Positions 29,136 through 41,954 of a stretch of 61,909 nucleotides of DNA are shown here, piece by piece. Origin of the DNA: Basidiobolus meristosporus CBS 931.73 (Eukaryota; Fungi; Basidiobolomycota); the NCBI GenBank assembly GCA_002104905.1, contig MCFE01000526.1, forward strand, positions 1-61,909, read 5' to 3'. The translations under genes were made by a program, and so were the position numbers. Position 1 is the first letter of the stretch. Every line of letters begins with the position of its first letter. The notes beneath the pieces are model-generated. The model had not been told where the DNA came from, searched no databases, and saw only the letters and a list, made by a program, of their open reading frames with translations.

Positions 29136-30584
29136 ATGCCGTTGATTTTGTTACTGCTATGGTTTGGTGTATCCATGTTCAATGGACTCTTTGCGAGAGG
29201 CATAGACCACCTTGACAATCCCCTCGTCTGCTACGATCACCCAAGGCCCTGGCAGAAGACCTACAAGATCCGAGTGGAGTGCGAGATGGAGGATGTTGGC
29301 AAGTTGAAAGGAGCACGAGTAATGTCCCCCGGGGAGCCAGCATTAAAACTGCAGCTTCAATGTAACGCAGAGCCAGAGAGATGCGACAAAGTCAGAGCAA
29401 CATTCGACACGGCATTCCGGCTGATCACGAATGTGGTGGTCTTCCGCGAACCGCTTGTTGTCAACGCCTCCTTCGTTTCTTTCTGCCAAGAGTTCAACGA
29501 GTGTAACCGAGATTTTCGAATATTGGGTAAGGTTTCTCCGTAGTCTCGTTTCGTTCGTATCCCAACATTGATCCCTCAAGGAAAGGAAGCGCAGGCCCCT
29601 CCAGAACGATTGTTTTGGTGGACGATGATGGACGAAAGCGGGCATTCCCTCAGGCTTTACTAAAGCAGAAGGGCTACGCCAAACACCCCAAATTCAGCCC
29701 TTCAGATATCATGGCCTCGTTCAACTCGGACGTGGATTTCTGGTTTCAAGTAAGTCGATCAGACAGTTTGGGCCCCCTTCCTGGCTGCCCTTAACTGAGA
29801 TTATCTGATGTAGGATGAAGGCGCCATGCAGAAAAGTCAAAGCGATTTTCTGTTCGTAATAATCCACGAATTGGTCCATGGACTAGGTGTTTCCTCGTCG
29901 TGGATGGATTATCTTCAAGACACGACCAAGGCGCTCACACCAAACATTTTAGTGGCCGCCACAGCAGAGCTATACATATTCGGTGGGTTTGTAGAGAATA
30001 TGTTTGATAAGTACATAGTCGAGTATCCATCGCTGAAGCCGCTGACAGATATGGTGGACCAGCTGGATGAATTCGCAGGTGGGCCGGGATCGATCTTCAG
30101 CAGTGTGGAGGAATTCAACCAGACATTCCACAACTCCCCACAATACATACATGCGGCCAGAATGGTGAACCTGACCACCACCCCACACACTCTGGCGTTT
30201 GTTCCACGAAACGCGTCCATGAACGAGCCGATTATTCTAGAGACTAGCCTTAATCCGTTTATTCCTGGCAGCTCTATATCTCATTTTGATTTTGCATCAT
30301 TCAGCGATTCCCCGGATTTCTTGATGAGATTCATGGAGGATAGGGGTGTCTCAATAGACGAAAACGTCGGCCGTGGTGGCCATTACATAGGGGGGGCGAT
30401 TGGCCCCCAGCTAATCAGTATTCTGGAAACGCTAGGTTACGAAATCAATCCGGCGCCAAGACCCCTGTCCGATTTCATATCGAAGGTTGAATCCGGCGCC
30501 GATGGCCAGAGAAGGCTGTGCGGCACGCTCTGGATCATCTCAACCATCGTCTTATACTTCCTATGTACATACTTGCTAGTGTGA
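29136..30584 (+). CDS. Secreted, possibly GPI-anchored zincin-like metallopeptidase (HEXXH), 3 exons
   Basis: Hydrophobic signal MPLILLLLWFGVSMF; PQALLKQ...DIMASFNSDVDFWF; IIHELVHGLG; SSISHFD; hydrophobic C-terminal tail. Introns lie at ~29528-29585 and ~29750-29814. Confidence 0.8.
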
Positions 30585-33685: not shown

Positions 33686-36068
33686 ATGACAGTTGAAGGT
33701 TTGTTTCCAGACCGAGTGAGTTCGCCTATGCGATGAGTTGATTGATCCAATTCCGCTGGTTTCTAGTCAGTACAAAGCGAAAAATATTACTGAGTGTCTG
33801 GGCGGTAGTCTTGATAGGGCTTCCGTTTTGGTGGAAGACTACTGAGGTGTATCGCGCCAAGCTACCTTTCGACGAAATAGACCACTGGCAAGATTTGGAG
33901 GTAGGAATTCTATCGTATACGTTCATGTGATGGAGCGTGATACCCCGCATCGGCCACATCTACTTACCCTGATGGTCGCAACAAATCCCATATTCAAGAA
34001 TAACGTAATTGATGTTCGATGTGCTATAGGAATGTTTGACTTTTCCTGTTCAAGTCAAACTTCATCTTCCTTCGACTCCGGAATCCCGCAACTTGGATTT
34101 GTCTGATATTACAAGAAATGTCCAGCATAATGTAGACTCCCAATCTCAAGCCAACGCAAGAAAAAACGTGATCATCAACTCCCACGGACAGGTTCGGGTC
34201 CCTGTCCAGATTACTAGTCAGTTGGACTCCTCTGAGAAAGGTTGGCTTTCAGTGTGACGCTCTCTTTATTGCTGACCAAGTTCGCTTAGTCTTCAAAAAC
34301 AGTTGAGGAATCGGAGGTGAACGGAGAATACCACATCTATATCCGACCGGTAGAAGATAGTGCTGTCAAGGAGCCGAAGGTGCTCCTCCAAGATTCTCGT
34401 AGCATTATTGTTGAAACTCAATCATTGGCCCAAGGTGGGTTATCGTCCATGCCTGCTCAGTAATGAGAAAAGACTAACCCTGTCCGTGGCAGATACTATT
34501 GTCGAGACAACATCGGCCATCATTTCAGAACTTTTCACTGAAGAAGAATCAAAGATTGCCAACACCCTGAACGATGATCAGAACTCCTCCAAGGTGGTTT
34601 CACCACATACAACTGTGTTACGAACTCGATTCTTATGCAGATTTATCAGGTCGATGCTGAATTGCGCAGAGTCATGAAATATGCATCCTCGTACCAGCTC
34701 ACTTTCTCCATGATGAACGAAGATCCATCGACCCTTTTGGTTTCCTGGGAGATCGATGCTGCACTGAAAGGTATCACCGAAAGCACATTTTCTTCCGCTC
34801 CACGAACTAAACCTCTCTTCTGCAGAGTATCTGTACCCATTCCTATCTGAGCTCACCAAGATCTCTAACTTCACAGTAGAGTCACAGGTATCCGTCGATG
34901 ACCATTGGCTGCTACTCTAGCGTGTATCTAAGATTCGTTTCTAGATTCAGAATTATGCTACTCTGACCGTGCAACCACAGCGACAAAATACCAAGAAATC
35001 GCACTACTACTACTTGAACCCGGAGTCCCTTCCTCATTTCATCAACTCCGCCGAGTGGAATTTGGGTCAGATACATGTCCGACTGCCATTGCATGTCTAG
35101 CTATTAATCGTGGGATATGATCAACAGCATCCGCAGTTTCCACCAGCCCTAGTATTAATTTTCTGATATACGTTCCATCCGAAAGCCATCGACCACTTCG
35201 CATCCATAGCGCCAAAGGTAAATGGTGTTTGAAGCCGCCAGCATAACTGCCTCCATCCACTAACACCGCCCAAGGTCAAAGGATCTCCAATAGTGCCTTC
35301 CTGATTCCTAGATATGGTGGTGTAGCTATTAGCAACCCCAAAGTGACCGAATCGACTGCAGCGCAGAAATCACACCATTTTACCGCTGCAGAGTTGCGAC
35401 CCTTCATGCAGACATTCACCGTGCAGCTACGTGAACTGTTGGGCATCGACGAGGTCAAAACCATCTTCAACGTAAGATATGGTAATCTAGGCATTGTTAA
35501 ATCGACCCGAACTAAATGGAGATCTCTTTCAAACAACAGAGAGCGGGAATCCAGGTGAGTCACGTATCAACCTCTGGTGTGGGGGTGACCCAATTGGAAT
35601 TGGATAGACTAGCACACAAACGCACCGCACAAAACATGGTTTCTGCTGCCGCGACCCTTAGCTCGCTGTCTAGATTGATCAATCAGATCCCCAATATGGT
35701 TGTATTAGACCATATACAGACCGAGGTACGCTATGATCCGCTTGTCGAGATTGAGTAAACTGCTTCTGATGCGCTTCCATCAACCCCGTCCCACTTAGGT
35801 TACCGAAGCCCTGGGGAGTTTGCAAAAAGCTTGCCATCATGTGAAGCAGATGGACTACCAAGCAGCGCTGCATTCCAGCAAGGAGGCTTTGGAGCGTTCG
35901 GAGTTGGCCTTCTTCGATCCGACCATGGTGTCCATGCTTTATTTCCCGGATGAGCACAAATACGCCATCTACATGCCACTGTTCTTCCCCATATCCGTAC
36001 CTTTAGTACTAACGGCCATCAAAGAATTGCAGGAGATGAGAAAGCGTAAAAAGCAGAAGACCGAGTAA
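33686..36068 (+). CDS. GPI17: GPI transamidase component PIG-S/Gpi17, multi-exon
   Basis: N-terminal IGLPFWWKTTEVYRAKLP and C-terminal AFFDPTMVSMLYFPDEHKYAIYMPLFFPISVPL. The ATG at 33686 lies in a short first exon. Confidence 0.92.
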
Positions 36069-36782
36069 CTCGTATGGAACATGGGATGCGAAACAACGGT
36101 TCAGCTGGAGCAGACTCTACATTATGGCTCAGACGGGTCCGCTTTGCTTTTCATTTCATTTCATTTCTCTTTGCTCGCAAGATTTTCATTGCTGATTTTA
36201 CGTCAGTTTCTTGGATGTATTGACTTGGTAACCGTTTATATATCTTATTAAATCAAAAGCTTTTGGGATTTCCCATTTGGCTTCCGAAACGAGGTCCATT
36301 GCTTGGGATGTGTTTATATACAACATCGATGTGACGTTTACTCCGGCTTGTCAGTGCAAATCTCCATACATTCTCAATAGTATACCCGGGGCTTCATTCT
36401 AAAAAAGCTTCACTCCAAAAGAAGGGAGTTGACTGCGGATCTCCTCGCACCCTGTGGCCAGGAATTGAACCAAAGAACCAAATGGAGTGATCCAGAGATT
36501 GGACCGGTTTTTGAATAAATTGAACTTCTTGTGAAGGGAATAAGAATGAAGGATTGGTTTATGATTGATATATTAAAATCCAAGCTTGGAGGATCTCCAG
36601 GGACCAACCACGAAGGTTTGGTTAAAAATGAACTAGATACCACCAGAAAACGAACCAAGGATAGGAAAGTATACGTTAACAAGCTTTTACTAAGGTTAGG
36701 AAAGCCAAAAGGTGAAATATATGGATCAAAAGCATAATGTAACATATTGAACAGACCATTTGGTTGGATTTCGATGATGTTT

Positions 36783-37806
36783 TTAAATATTGGCTTGGAT
36801 AGCAGGTGTGAGCTCCGAAGAAGATTCAACACAATGCTTAGGGAACACTCCCTTAATACGTCCTCGGCTCTCGTTGATTCCCTGCACCCATCCATCATCG
36901 TATTCGACAAGAATGGTTACCTGATCTCCTGGGTATACTTCAAGTTCGTCACCTAATGTTGGCGTATATGTGCTAACTACAGTATATGTCTTGTGCATAT
37001 TAGGTGGAGGTAGTTTGGTGTCTTCAAAAATGGCGCTTTCGAATCCTCGGCCACCAGCATCTGCCATCTGAGAACTCATGTTCTTCTTGGATTGATGTCG
37101 ACGATACATAAACATGGCAAGGCCAGCCATTCCAACCACGGCCACTCCTACAACGCCTCCAATCACACCAGTAGACACTCCAGTGGAATGAGATCCACTA
37201 TTCCCAGCATTTTGATCCTTCGAGACTTCGTTAGGAACTTGCGAGGTGTTCGATGTGTCAGTGGGGTTGGCGGAAAGAGGCTTCTTAGGAGGAGTCGGAT
37301 CTGGGGAACATTCATGCTGGTTAATTTACACAGGACGAAAAGGGGGTTTCGGATGATCGGGTCCGTCGAGTATTGAACTTACCGGCAGCCGGGCTTGGTT
37401 TAATTGCAAGGCAGCTAATCAAGGATTTAACTTTAGACGAGTAGCACTTCATGTTCTTATCAGAGCCAGCTGATGTGGAAAAACAGCCATGAACCATGGT
37501 GCCATTTCCGACATCGGAAGTAGCATCGCAGTCCACCTGTCGTTCATTGAAGGTACCTACTCGGAGGGGAATGGTGGTTCCTTTGCAGTAACCCCAGTTA
37601 TCCTCGGGAGTAGGTCGACGTAAAAAGCACCAAGGCTTTCCTTGATTATCAGCCTCTGTGCATCCTTGGTACTGAATCCCTTTGTACTGGAAACTGGAAA
37701 CGCATTCAGTATAACGAACTGTAGGATTTGCCAAGCAAACCGCACTGAGTGTGAGGATGCATAGAAGCAGAACTGCAATCGGGGTGGTTTGTAAAGGGGC
37801 CTTCAT
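36783..37806 (-). CDS. Single-pass membrane protein (~313 aa): signal peptide, FN2-like module, second 4-Cys module, S/T/P stalk, TM helix and C-terminal SH3; exons 37806-37383 and 37300-36783
   Basis: A phase-1 intron GTAAGT...TTCCCCAG joins ORFs 37321-37887 and 36783-37178 in frame. TM: VIGGVVGVAVVGMAGLAMFMY-RR. SH3: YTVVSTYTPTLGDELEVYPGDQVTILVEYDDGWVQG...GVFPKHCV. Confidence 0.88.
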
Positions 37807-40631
37807 CTGGTAATCTGCGACTTGGGCGCTATAGAACCTATTTGGGGTTGGTACAAAGGCTTGAATCGATTTGCCCCAAACGAACACTTACACGAGCGTC
37901 AAGTGTGATGAGCACGAATAATTTAATGGGTATAATTTCAACTCAGCAATCAAGCCTCAGATGAAATGTATACGGTTGAATGGACTATCCGAGTTCCAGT
38001 TGGTTGAGAATAAATAGGAGGGGAGGCTAACCAACGAACAAGGGAAGCACTTGCAAAACGGAGGATTGGGAAGTATCAAAGATCGATTATCCAGCACTGA
38101 TCTTTGATTCAAGTGAAAACGAGCGTTTTCCGATAGTGGAGGGAGACTCAAAATCGGGTGGGACCAATGCGCGCTATTGTTATAAAGGTCGATGGTGAGT
38201 CTTCTATAACAGCGCGAGAGATGCAATCCGAGAAGATGGGGAAGAGCCTCAAGGATTGGTGAAGAAATAAGGATGAAAAACGAGGTGAGAGAAGGATTAA
38301 AGCAAATGGACAGTGAGAGATCCGTTCGTTAAAATACCGCCACTCGATTGAGATTGGGAGAAAATCAACTCAATATATGATTGCATGAAACCCTGCTTAT
38401 ATGCATGTAACAAAACACAAATGAATTTTACCTATTTGGTCTGGTTGTATGCTCCAGTTGGATGAAATATTTCCAAAAACCATGACATTAACATAGAGTT
38501 TAAATGAGCCAGTTCCTAATCAGGGTAGACTCATAACATCAAAAGCAACTTAATATCTATTTCTTGATGTATCCAGGCCTCTGATAGCAGCTAGCAACCA
38601 CCTCGTTAATCCCATACTCATTCGGATAACGGGGCCCTCCATTGGCTAGGTCTCACTCTAATACACACATTAGTACCACAATATATGTTTGGCAACGGAT
38701 TACCATATGAAATACTGGTCTGAGAATGATTAAGATATTCTTGATTCTCGGAAAAAATGTCGTTGCTGCTTATTCTGAGACAGCACGTTGATGGCTGCTC
38801 TTAATGCTTGATGGCCCTGGCCAGTATTCGTTGCAGGTGAAGTAACAAACATGCTGTGTGTGATAGAAGCTTACAGCGACCGAGAGGCTTTAGCCTGGCA
38901 AGCCCGGACCACTCCATAAGCCTTAGTAGTACCAGGATCAGCCGATGCACATTTATTCCCGGGTACTCCAAGAAGCCTTGGTTATAGCAACAACCACAGA
39001 CAAGAATGGCTGCTCCATTCCCAGAGCCTAGTCACAAATGGGAAGCTAGGCCTGTTTCCGGCACTCGGCGTCGTCGTTGGTGGATGGTTAATCCTGTGCC
39101 ACGCCTCATACCTGGGTACCGGTTGTCAGACCTGAAAACACTCGAACTGAAAAGGTCCCGATTTTTGTAAGATCTTCAAATGCGCATAAATCAAACAGTG
39201 TGCCAATCACAATATTCGGTGGAATGGAATGCATATTTGGCTTGAATTGGCTTGTTAAACAACGATGTGATGTGCTCGTTGGATGTGGGACTAAATAAGT
39301 GCGTGTTAGGTCACTGGGGAACTCCCACTTGAATATATCAAATCACTAGAGTCACGGAGGATTAAGAGTGATAATCTGAGATTAAGGTGCCTATGATGAA
39401 AGGCAATTAGCCCCACCAGCCAATCACCGCTGACCACCACAATGCATCATTATAGCAAAGCAATTGAAACTTTATTAATCTTCAATTAAGACTCATTCCA
39501 GGTGGGGTCGAAGTGAATGTTTACATAAAGTGGATCTTGATAAGAACAATTCAAGGGGTTGAGAGGGTGTAGCCCAGTGTAGCCTAGCCGTAGTGTAGCT
39601 AAGTTTGGGTCTTATGGCGACAGTGAATATTGGGTGTTGCTTGTACTCAGCATATTGCATGATCGGTGAACCTCATAGCATAAATGGCGCTCCGTCGATG
39701 CTTCTAGCTAAGCGCTGCAGGTTAAAGAAGACCCTCAGCTGTTTTAAACGACCATGACCACATATATTATAGCGACATACTTGGCCATCTTTTTCCATGG
39801 AGGATCGGAGAGAACCGAGGCTTCACGACATGTGTGAGTGAAAGGGATGGCTGCTATGTATCAGAGAATCCCGATGGTATATTACTTCTTTTGTTCTCTC
39901 AAAATAGAGTACTCGCAACGATGACACTTATAAGAAATCCGTGTAACATGTTTACATAAATGCGTATTTTAGTAATATTCGTCAATGGAAATGCGCTCTT
40001 TGTATCACTTCCTTTCTACGCTCTACGGCTGCAAATCTCGCGTAATCTAAAGTGCTCTGATTTTTCCCAGCCTATTCTATAGGCCCAAGCATCATCCTTT
40101 GCTCAATGTGTTATTCTGTTCTGTTGTGATTCGCCAATATGGTATGAGACGGGAAAAATATAAATTTGGAGTAACAAGGGCATAGCCAACCTAATCGAAA
40201 GTTGAAGTTGTTGGGATGTGGTGTTGTGGCTGTATATGGTTACGCCCACAATGGGGAGTCTCGACAACCTCACAATACATATGTATATCAATAGAACGCA
40301 TTCCTTTGTTTGAACAGATTTAATGAGCTTCAATAGAATTCCATAAACTAAAACGGAAAAAGATACAACGAATTATTGATATCCTGTGGTAAACTGGGCG
40401 TGCTAGGGCAGAGGTGCAAGGTATATAAACGACAGAAGGAATAGAGGCGGTGTAGAAGTTCAAATATTGTATTACAAAACGTGAGAGTGAGAAAGTAACA
40501 ACTATGGCTTTTTAAAATTATGACTATGAGGGATTGGAAGAGTATTAAACTAGAGGTACAATGGATACGAGGCATCGAACACCAGACAACCAGCAACGGC
40601 CGACATAATGCTTTCGTACGTTGATTGTCTT

Positions 40632-41954
40632 TCATTTAAATGCTTGTGCCTTTTCACAGTAAGGTAGGCGCATGTTTTGCGCCTTTTCAAGCTTCTTCTT
40701 ATCAGTCGGAAATATCCAACTCTTGGCTTGCCTAATAGCTTCGTCCTTTCTTTGCCTCTCTTGGTTGCATTCATACACCAGGTAGCGATAGTACTGGCTT
40801 TCCACATTTTCCTCAAACTGTCTCAGCTTTGAATTGTAAGCGGTATTAGAAAATACGCTGTGAAATTCCCGTGGTTCGACAAAATACTCCACATGGCGTT
40901 TCCGAGTCTCCCGTCTGTGGTTGAAGTGACCAGTCAGATCAAAAGAGAAGTCAGGATCAGGTGTACCGCTGAACAGAGAGGAGAGAATGGAGAAGAGGAA
41001 AAGAAGGAAAAACGGTAGAAGCTTAAGGTAAGTAAATGTATCCGAATCAGAGGCAGCTCCCCGGTGCGCATATTGAGGTCTTTGGTATTGGCGATGATAG
41101 CGGACGCCATCGTGGCCCATAAAGGTAGATGCTGGGAACCCTATTATTCATCGCAATTGAGTATCTCTCAATACTTAATCGTCAATAGTTTGAATTACCT
41201 CCTCCAAAAAACATGTTGAATAATTGCTCCGGGTTAATCTCATCTTCAAATTGATATCCACGGGTATTGCTTGAGAAACCTCTTGCTCCTGAGCTCCGAG
41301 ATTCAGGATCACAACCTGATTGATCGAACACCCTTCTCTTGTCGCTGTCACTCAGAATGGTAAAAGCTTTGCTGATAACTGGATAACAACTCATTAGCCC
41401 ACCAATAGTGCAGACAGGGAGCTGCAGTGTACTTACGCTTGAATGCCTCATCTGCTCCGGGAGCCGAGTTTTTGTCTGGGTGGAACTGTAGTGCAAGCTA
41501 AACATAAAAGAATAATTGTTATTGCAGGCAACACGCGCTTTCAAGGCCAACATGGGCGTACCTTTCTATAAGCCTTTTTAATCTGTGCTTCAGTGGCTGA
41601 TTTTTCTATTCCAAGAATGGCGTAGAAATCGTTAGGATTGCAGGCCTTTATCTTCTTCACTGCCTCCACCTGCTCCTTTGTGTATGCCTTTGTCTGACGA
41701 CCAGAGGTAGACTCGGCTTTTGGATTGTTGGGAATAGAGGTTTTTGGTCCCGCGGCAGCTTCGTATGCAGGAGGAGGGCTGGAAGGCTCATCTGAGGATT
41801 GCTCCACTTTCAGGAGGAATTTCTCCGCCTCTGTGGTTGGGTAAAGAGCGATCGACTTTCTGGCAAATTTCAATGCGCTTGCTCGATTGCCACCGTCGAA
41901 ATGTTTCTTTGCGATGTCCAAGCAACGCGACGCCTCGTCTTTGTTGACCTCCAT
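40632..41954 (-). CDS. HLJ1: ER membrane J-domain protein (Hlj1/DNAJB12-like), 4 exons
   Basis: MEVNKDEASRCLDIAK N-terminus; J domain with LALQFHPDKNSAPGADEAFK; EDEINPEQLFNMFFG; TM helix; DUF1977-like C-terminus. Confidence 0.93.

Follow-up and report, generated by a model that had tools for sequence, protein, structure and literature searches.

What does a fungus do with a gene that appears to join extracellular modules best known from animals to an intracellular SH3 domain, and where did those modules come from? This question is raised by a gene on the minus strand of contig MCFE01000526.1 of Basidiobolus meristosporus CBS 931.73 (assembly GCA_002104905.1), which was analyzed over its full 61,909 nucleotides and is referred to here as the window. 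The open reading frame list and translations give a two-exon gene at 36783-37806, in which a signal peptide and two modules of the fibronectin type II (FN2) kind precede a stalk, a transmembrane (TM) helix and an SH3 domain. We put the probability at roughly 0.6 that the gene is functional and encodes a type I protein spanning the plasma membrane once, a member of a family of early-diverging fungi that serves as a cell-surface sensor or anchor. The family is undescribed, and it represents a new arrangement of known parts rather than a new mechanism: neither of its domain types is new, and its sensor-like layout is known as well.

The spliced product of 313 amino acids is 100% identical (script-checked) to the database protein P0001 (K493DRAFT_319437, B. 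meristosporus CBS 931.73). This record was recovered by a word-indexed protein search with the exon 1 residues of a 188-amino acid open reading frame. Its public annotation is hypothetical or SH3-containing and nothing more, because the precomputed annotation lists SH3 alone. The exons were searched separately, full-length searches used the P0001 record, and the exons were joined in scripts for the identity check and for the ratio of nonsynonymous to synonymous substitution rates (dN/dS). The features of the gene and its product are as follows.

37383..37806, minus strand: exon 1, starting with the ATG at 37806 and holding codons 1-141 and the first base of Asp142; it encodes the signal peptide and the two-module ectodomain, and its translation equals P0001 residues 1-141.
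37301..37382, minus strand: intron of 82 nt, phase 1, with a GTAAGT donor and a CAG acceptor, splitting the Asp142 codon.
36783..37300, minus strand: exon 2, encoding the stalk, TM helix, juxtamembrane segment, SH3 domain, short tail and stop codon, equal to P0001 residues 143-313.
37729..37806, minus strand: signal peptide, residues 1-26, a hydrophobic N-terminus ending in CLA before NPTV, with a predicted cleavage site.
37579..37728, minus strand: FN2 module 1, residues 27-76, with Cys 35, 49, 60 and 74, recognized by Pfam fn2, the family profile and the predicted fold.
37402..37578, minus strand: FN2-fold module 2, residues 77-135, with Cys 93, 108, 121 and 132, degenerate in sequence and assigned by predicted fold.
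37170..37298, minus strand: Ser/Thr/Pro-rich stalk, residues 143-185, defined by composition; the stalk already starts at residue 136 in exon 1.
37104..37169, minus strand: TM helix, residues 186-207, rich in Gly, Ala and Val, located by a hydropathy scan.
36990..37103, minus strand: cytosolic juxtamembrane segment, residues 208-245, with an LPPP motif immediately before the SH3 domain.
36819..36989, minus strand: SH3 domain, residues 246-302, from SH3_9, SH3_1 and PDB matches.

Translation and a residue check place the signal peptide, both cysteine sets, the FN2 signature, the stalk, the TM helix and the SH3 domain exactly as in a preliminary description of the locus made from its sequence. 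An alternative, nearer acceptor at 37317/37318 leads to an in-frame stop and an unspliced reading across 37301-37382 also runs into a stop, so that only the 37301-37382 splice connects the ectodomain to the TM-SH3 half. The residues spanning the exon junction are conserved in sequence comparisons, and it is on conservation that the splice model rests. The NPTV at the start of the mature domain is likewise kept in relatives. The single intron falls where the folded modules give way to the stalk, and phase 1 is typical of shuffled extracellular modules in animals; with one intron, this may be chance.

Module 1 is a true FN2 homolog, as had been proposed. Its cysteines are spaced C35-x13-C49-x10-C60-x13-C74 and accompanied by FQY, PWC and WGYC, and the cysteines together with the aromatics before C2, C3 and C4 are conserved across an 18-sequence alignment. 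Exon 1 matched Pfam fn2 (PF00040) with 25.7 bits at residues 39-74, above the cutoff of 22.2 bits, and four relatives scored 23.5-27.0 bits; as all five Basidiobolus sequences tested clear the cutoff narrowly (22.4-27.0 bits), the match across the genus can be called marginal but consistent. A single-sequence search of the PDB returned the neurotrypsin kringle, MMP-2, PDC-109, MMP-9, and factor XII at E values of about 1e-4, and a profile of 18 family ectodomains returned MMP-9 (E 1.4e-13) and MMP-2 (E 4e-13), with 15 of 15 matches being FN2 proteins and the alignment running on through the inter-module linker into the linkers of the MMPs and fibronectin. In the predicted ectodomain model described below, the module 1 part (model residues 7-53) superimposes on the FN2 of PDC-109 with Z 3.6 and a root-mean-square deviation of 2.5 over 42 amino acids at 33% identity. 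Two other cysteine modules were considered and rejected: Kringle reached 13-15 bits against a Pfam cutoff of 34, and WSC (PF01822) was unmatched in Pfam scans of exon 1 and of the whole protein. The possibility left open in the preliminary description, that the head is a different Cys module, thereby falls away.

C2 and C4 of module 1 are jointly lost in Piptocephalis and in about 37 bacterial sequences, all of which keep C1 and C3, an indirect sign that fits the FN2 pairing C2-C4. Between C3 and C4, animal FN2 modules have an aromatic in an N-[YF]-D motif; the fungal family has non-aromatic residues at the aligned position. An FN2-like pocket in module 1 is plausible, with a specificity that is not readable from sequence. 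Set beside the tandem FN2 modules of animals (MMP-2, MMP-9, fibronectin 1FnII-2FnII, and PDC-109), module 1 is alike in four-Cys spacing, aromatic signature and predicted fold, whereas the signature is lost from the second fungal module, the N-[YF]-D loop aromatic is absent, and the modules sit in a small TM-SH3 protein, where the animal ones belong to secreted proteases, matrix proteins or endocytic lectins.

Module 2, with a cysteine spacing of C93-x14-C108-x12-C121-x10-C132 and an NGT sequon at residue 101, is supported by its predicted fold as a degenerate tandem FN2. None of the Pfam families matched residues 76-141 at E ≤1. Compared profile to profile, the two modules aligned weakly (probability 44%, E 2.4e-4), but C1-C3 fell into register. 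The AlphaFold model for residues 27-141, for which the 18-sequence alignment served as input, has a predicted local distance difference test score (pLDDT) of 92 and a predicted template modeling score of 0.81. When it was scanned exhaustively against 48,161 chains, 20 chains reached Z ≥2, and all 20 contain FN2, with matches covering both halves of the model; for its residues 54-109 the matches, at Z 2.4-2.9, are to FN2 modules from PLA2R, MMP-2, IGF2R, factor XII, DEC205, and the mannose receptor. The best Foldseek rows for the ectodomain were MMP-9, fibronectin, MMP-2, and PDC-109 (104-112 columns, probability 0.97, E 7e-3), so that the two structural comparisons suggested beforehand, with MMP-2 and PDC-109, are both among them. 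Modeled by itself (pLDDT 84), module 2 gave a list of chains whose top 19 are all FN2, at Z 3.3-5.0 with 44-58 of 61 residues aligned, followed by kringles at Z 2.1-2.9. The argument for the fold rests on the exclusivity of these match lists and not on the size of Z. The bacterial counterpart of module 2, described below, keeps an FN2-like signature, which gives independent support for the fungal module 2 as a derived FN2. The earlier idea of a degenerate tandem copy thus holds at the level of predicted fold and finds no Pfam profile match for residues 76-141.

The second half of the protein consists of the stalk, the TM helix and the SH3-bearing tail. The stalk carries sequons and is probably glycosylated. 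The TM helix has a weak Pfam match to TM_ErbB1, under the cutoff, and is followed directly on its C-terminal side by RRHQSKK, which points to a cytosolic tail and a predicted type I topology. The LPPP motif before the SH3 domain is shared by the Basidiobolus copies. SH3_9 (PF14604) matched with 38.5 bits (cutoff 30; E about 1e-9 to 3e-9) and SH3_1 (PF00018) with 24.7 bits (cutoff 22.9), and the PDB matches of the region are SH3 domains, with p47phox at E 3e-8; aligned with p47phox, the domain keeps the ALYDY-region Tyr as well as the Trp and the Pro, and carries C298 at a position normally occupied by Tyr. The domain is near-invariant across the family, from Olpidium to Mucor. A Protein Atlas feature search with the tail gave sub-threshold leads only. 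In orthologs from Entomophthorales and Mucoromycota, a conserved basic, Ser-rich C-terminal motif, K-R-x-S-S, follows the SH3 domain (alignment columns ~600-622); it is absent from all Basidiobolus copies, and it might be phosphorylated by a kinase or bound by the SH3 domain of the same protein.

The gene is not a one-off. An exhaustive profile search of 1.84 billion representatives detected 253 proteins at E ≤0.001, and those matching both modules as one stretch have the full architecture in common. Two FN2 modules, stalk, TM helix and SH3 domain are found together in Basidiobolus, with at least three full paralogs and a truncated model per species, in Conidiobolus coronatus, Neoconidiobolus thromboides, and Entomophthora muscae, in two species of Piptocephalis and in Olpidium bornovanus, and in a group of short metagenome contigs that is sister to Piptocephalis (support 95/96). 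The chytrids Cladochytrium replicatum (P0025) and Nowakowskiella sp. (P0041) carry the two-module unit three times in tandem, followed by a TM helix and a short tail that lacks SH3. Chytrid repeats 1, 2, and 3 each pair between the two species, and this one-to-one pairing indicates that the triplication is older than their split. Proteins from Mucorales, Umbelopsis, Endogonales, Calcarisporiella, and Glomeromycotina have a Cys-free, Ser/Thr-rich ectodomain, a TM helix and SH3, without FN2, and in these Mucoromycota members the SH3 core is almost invariant. In Dikarya, a word-indexed family-profile search of limited sensitivity gave weak SH3 matches only, with no Fus1 and no Saccharomycetes protein; the best match was an unrelated-looking Exophiala SH3 protein of 622 amino acids (E 3e-14). 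Public databases automatically tag some paralogs as FN2- or SH3-containing, and public annotation confirms the B. meristosporus paralogs. On the simplest reading, which assumes the usual fungal phylogeny for its three steps, the FN2x2-TM-SH3 architecture would already have been present when Olpidium and the terrestrial fungi last shared an ancestor, the head would then have been lost in Mucoromycota, and the protein would have been lost, or have diverged past detection, in Dikarya. Searches of the literature on FN2 in fungi, on Basidiobolus SH3 proteins and on PhoD with FN2 found no description of the family. The suggestion of an undescribed sensor therefore holds as far as publication goes and has to be widened from a single protein to a family in Entomophthoromycotina, Zoopagomycotina, and Olpidium.

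The coding sequence is under purifying selection, with an overall dN/dS of 0.16, and the locus reads as a functional gene. Between species, the proportions of nonsynonymous (pN) and synonymous (pS) differences are 0.12 and 0.51 for module 1, 0.15 and 0.54 for module 2, and 0.05 and 0.68 for the SH3 domain, which is the most constrained part.

From these features we propose that the compact FN2-fold pair, held outside the cell on its Ser/Thr/Pro stalk, would engage an extracellular ligand, and that the SH3 domain would gather partner proteins beneath the membrane at the site of the ligand. By analogy, the protein may act as a sensor or a scaffold, and its ligand would more probably belong to the wall or matrix of the fungus itself, or be of a general environmental kind, than be a protein of a host, because the carriers of the FN2 head share no host type: their lifestyles are unrelated and include insect pathogens, a mycoparasite, a plant-root parasite and saprobes.

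Several points weigh against this proposal. The joining of the exons and the expression of the gene are backed by conservation rather than reads, and the role as a surface sensor draws on sequence and models for every member of the family. The full-length protein scores just 22.4 bits for Pfam fn2, against the cutoff of 22.2. The Z values for the fold are low (2.4-5.0), because the domains are small (45-60 residues), and come from predicted models. The SH3 domain has an invariant Cys (C298) at the position usually held by the Tyr of the SNY motif, which makes its ligand class uncertain. The FN2 head is dispensable in Mucoromycota, and its share in the core function is unclear.

The layout invites comparison with yeast surface proteins. 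Fus1 of Saccharomyces cerevisiae has a Ser/Thr-rich extracellular segment, one TM helix and a C-terminal SH3 domain; the B. meristosporus protein shares this type I layout, and the Mucoromycota orthologs look the same, whereas Fus1 has no folded ectodomain and no sequence homology was detected between the family and Dikarya proteins of the Fus1 type. Sho1 is a looser likeness, with a cytosolic C-terminal SH3 domain and four TM helices rather than one. Mid2 is a yeast wall sensor without a Cys-rich head. The logic of the Wsc1-3 and Mid2 sensors is the same: a Ser/Thr-rich stalk bears a Cys-rich head (8 Cys), a single TM helix leads to a signaling tail, and there are head-less relatives, which the Mucoromycota orthologs parallel; for Wsc1, the Cys-rich head, Ser/Thr-rich stalk, single TM helix and signaling tail are documented (PMC9024836). 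In contrast to the Wsc sensors, the head described here is FN2, of kringle-like fold, and not WSC, and as output an SH3 domain takes the place of the short Rom2-binding tail.

It is unlikely, though worth weighing, that the protein is a Fus1-like fusion or polarity scaffold whose core is the stalk, TM helix and SH3 domain, the FN2 head being a lineage-specific accessory; such a scaffold would serve the fusion of gametangia or hyphae, or polarized growth. The O-glycosylated-looking stalk, the TM helix and the C-terminal SH3 domain resemble those of Fus1, the Mucoromycota orthologs do without a folded head, the SH3 domain is the most constrained part, and a language-model search gave, as a lead only, an Ascomycota SH3 cluster (510 amino acids, 0.78). 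However, the word-indexed search with the family profile detected no relationship to Dikarya Fus1, and the FN2 modules are under purifying selection and kept from Olpidium to Entomophthorales, which argues that they are not neutral decoration.

We consider it slightly more unlikely still that the FN2 head, like FN2 modules of animals, recognizes collagen or gelatin, or choline phospholipids, belonging to an animal host or substrate, with the SH3 domain passing on the signal. Amphibian and reptile guts are a habitat of Basidiobolus, and Entomophthorales are insect pathogens; module 1 retains most of the FN2 aromatics (F/Y-x-Y before C2, W before C3, and W-G-Y before C4); and a ligand of the phospho-ester or headgroup type would be in keeping with the bacterial unit, which is joined to a PhoD phosphatase/phosphodiesterase. 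Yet the N-[YF]-D aromatic is replaced by non-aromatic residues in the fungal family, the sequence signature of module 2 is wholly lost, and neither the plant-root parasite Olpidium and the mycoparasite Piptocephalis, which have the same architecture, nor the saprobic chytrids, which have the FN2 unit, meet collagen. A surface sensor or anchor for a wall, matrix or environmental ligand remains the reading that we prefer.

The closest non-fungal relatives of the whole two-module unit are PhoD phosphatases of marine Gammaproteobacteria. In the ESM Atlas, its best structural match was to bacterial PhoD-family alkaline phosphatases with fn2 (TM-score 0.78, 101 amino acids, root-mean-square deviation 2.0). 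One such PhoD member, P0051 (L004:8001-9719), lies in an ordinary bacterial gene neighborhood, and over 134 residues its N-terminus shares 33.6% identity with P0001. A related-locus search with the whole bacterial protein found a homolog of the two-FN2 unit at the N-terminus of PhoD in about 45 species of marine Gammaproteobacteria, mostly pigmented Pseudoalteromonas, with Thalassomonas, Microbulbifer, Bermanella, and one Alteromonadaceae metagenome-assembled genome among the other carriers; the same search with the bacterial unit alone gave nothing. In the related loci (L006-L050), the match begins near position 1001. The N-terminal region of the Pseudoalteromonas-type proteins is homologous to the whole fungal unit; in contrast to the fungal proteins, the bacterial unit is fused to the phosphatase and a further C-terminal FN2, without TM helix or SH3. 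Metagenome-assembled genomes of Acidobacteriota have PhoD with the C-terminal FN2 only. In the bacterial proteins, module 1 is without C2 and C4, and module 2 retains the FN2-like signature.

In a tree of the two-module unit, all bacterial sequences group together (100/100), and their long branch joins an unresolved region near Basidiobolus and Olpidium. The bacterial carriers imply an exchange of the cassette between kingdoms, the direction of which the two-module tree does not resolve; transfer from eukaryote to bacterium appears more likely, because its range is narrow in bacteria but broad among fungi and eukaryotes. FN2 also occurs outside animals, being present in chytrids, a dinoflagellate, Paulinella, and marine bacteria, although a domain survey scored fn2 as deuterostome-specific (PMC2394772) and the preliminary description had treated it as classically an animal module. 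The dinoflagellate case is a Gymnodinium smaydae transcript (P0010) of 4529 amino acids with at least 25 FN2 modules and a C-terminal TM helix, for which transcriptome contamination is possible; the Paulinella micropora protein is P0046.

We tentatively suggest, as a possibility well short of even odds, that the FN2 pair is an ancient extracellular binding cassette that predates or lies outside animals. Early fungi, chytrids and Zoopagomycota included, would already have had it, and it would have passed between them and marine bacteria on at least one occasion; its fungal form would head an FN2x2-TM-SH3 receptor, with the head lost in Mucoromycota and the protein lost or diverged in Dikarya. 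If so, the cassette would mark an unrecognized fungal route from an extracellular ligand to SH3-based signaling. The distribution indicates that FN2 is older and more widespread than is usually assumed, so that the origin of a classic extracellular-matrix module is pushed back or complicated, and the occurrence of one two-module unit on fungal receptors and bacterial phosphatases is a concrete case of module exchange between kingdoms. The family also supplies a candidate surface protein in fungi for which hardly any surface signaling proteins are known, several of them insect pathogens or occasional human pathogens.

It is very improbable that Basidiobolus recently acquired an animal FN2 exon horizontally from its vertebrate host. 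Uptake of foreign genes has been reported for Basidiobolus, those genes being bacterial and concerned with secondary metabolism (PMC7466969), and the top total profile score belongs to a frog protein with 10 FN2 repeats. However, that score is a sum over the 10 repeats, and the top scores of frog, sardine and amphioxus proteins in the profile search in general stem from 10-18 FN2 repeats each. Moreover, the two-module unit with its odd module 2 is common to five other fungal genera and the chytrids, the neighboring PIG-S-like and DnaJ genes are ordinary, and the locus is syntenic between species. A single-module tree of 52 columns, largely unresolved and labeling P0051 and JGI metagenome sequences as fungal by architecture alone, places the Basidiobolus modules outside the animal clade and groups frog with sardine repeats (97/95). 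The earlier alternatives of an ancient relic or a horizontal acquisition are thus narrowed: acquisition from an animal finds no support in tree or spread, and an exchange of the unit with bacteria is implied.

That the gene is an annotation artifact or a decaying pseudogene, with unrelated open reading frames joined by a false intron, is scarcely credible: support for the junction comes from conservation and not reads, yet the intron has identical position and phase in P0001, its B. ranarum ortholog P0002 and the B. meristosporus paralog P0003 while differing in length (82, 100, and 68 nt) and being unrelated in sequence, a Conidiobolus ortholog encodes the same architecture without an intron, the junction sequence is conserved and dN/dS is low.

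The window neighbors (about 33800-36070, 40632-41954, and 29802-30512) are ordinary and include a PIG-S-like gene, syntenic with B. ranarum, and a DnaJ/DUF1977 gene. The B. ranarum locus of P0002 is collinear with the window and lies beside the PIG-S-like gene. The paralogous locus of P0003 shares another window neighbor, a 252-amino acid open reading frame at 29826-30584, which suggests that the Basidiobolus paralogs arose by segmental or whole-genome duplication. An Rfam scan of 36000-39500 gave no match. A non-coding block at 38296-38563, ~490-760 bp upstream of the ATG at 37806, contains a TATAAG box and is strongly conserved at the B. ranarum locus; its core is also kept at the B. meristosporus paralog, though synonymous sites between these genes are saturated. 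The block is probably the core promoter and the start of a long 5′ untranslated region.

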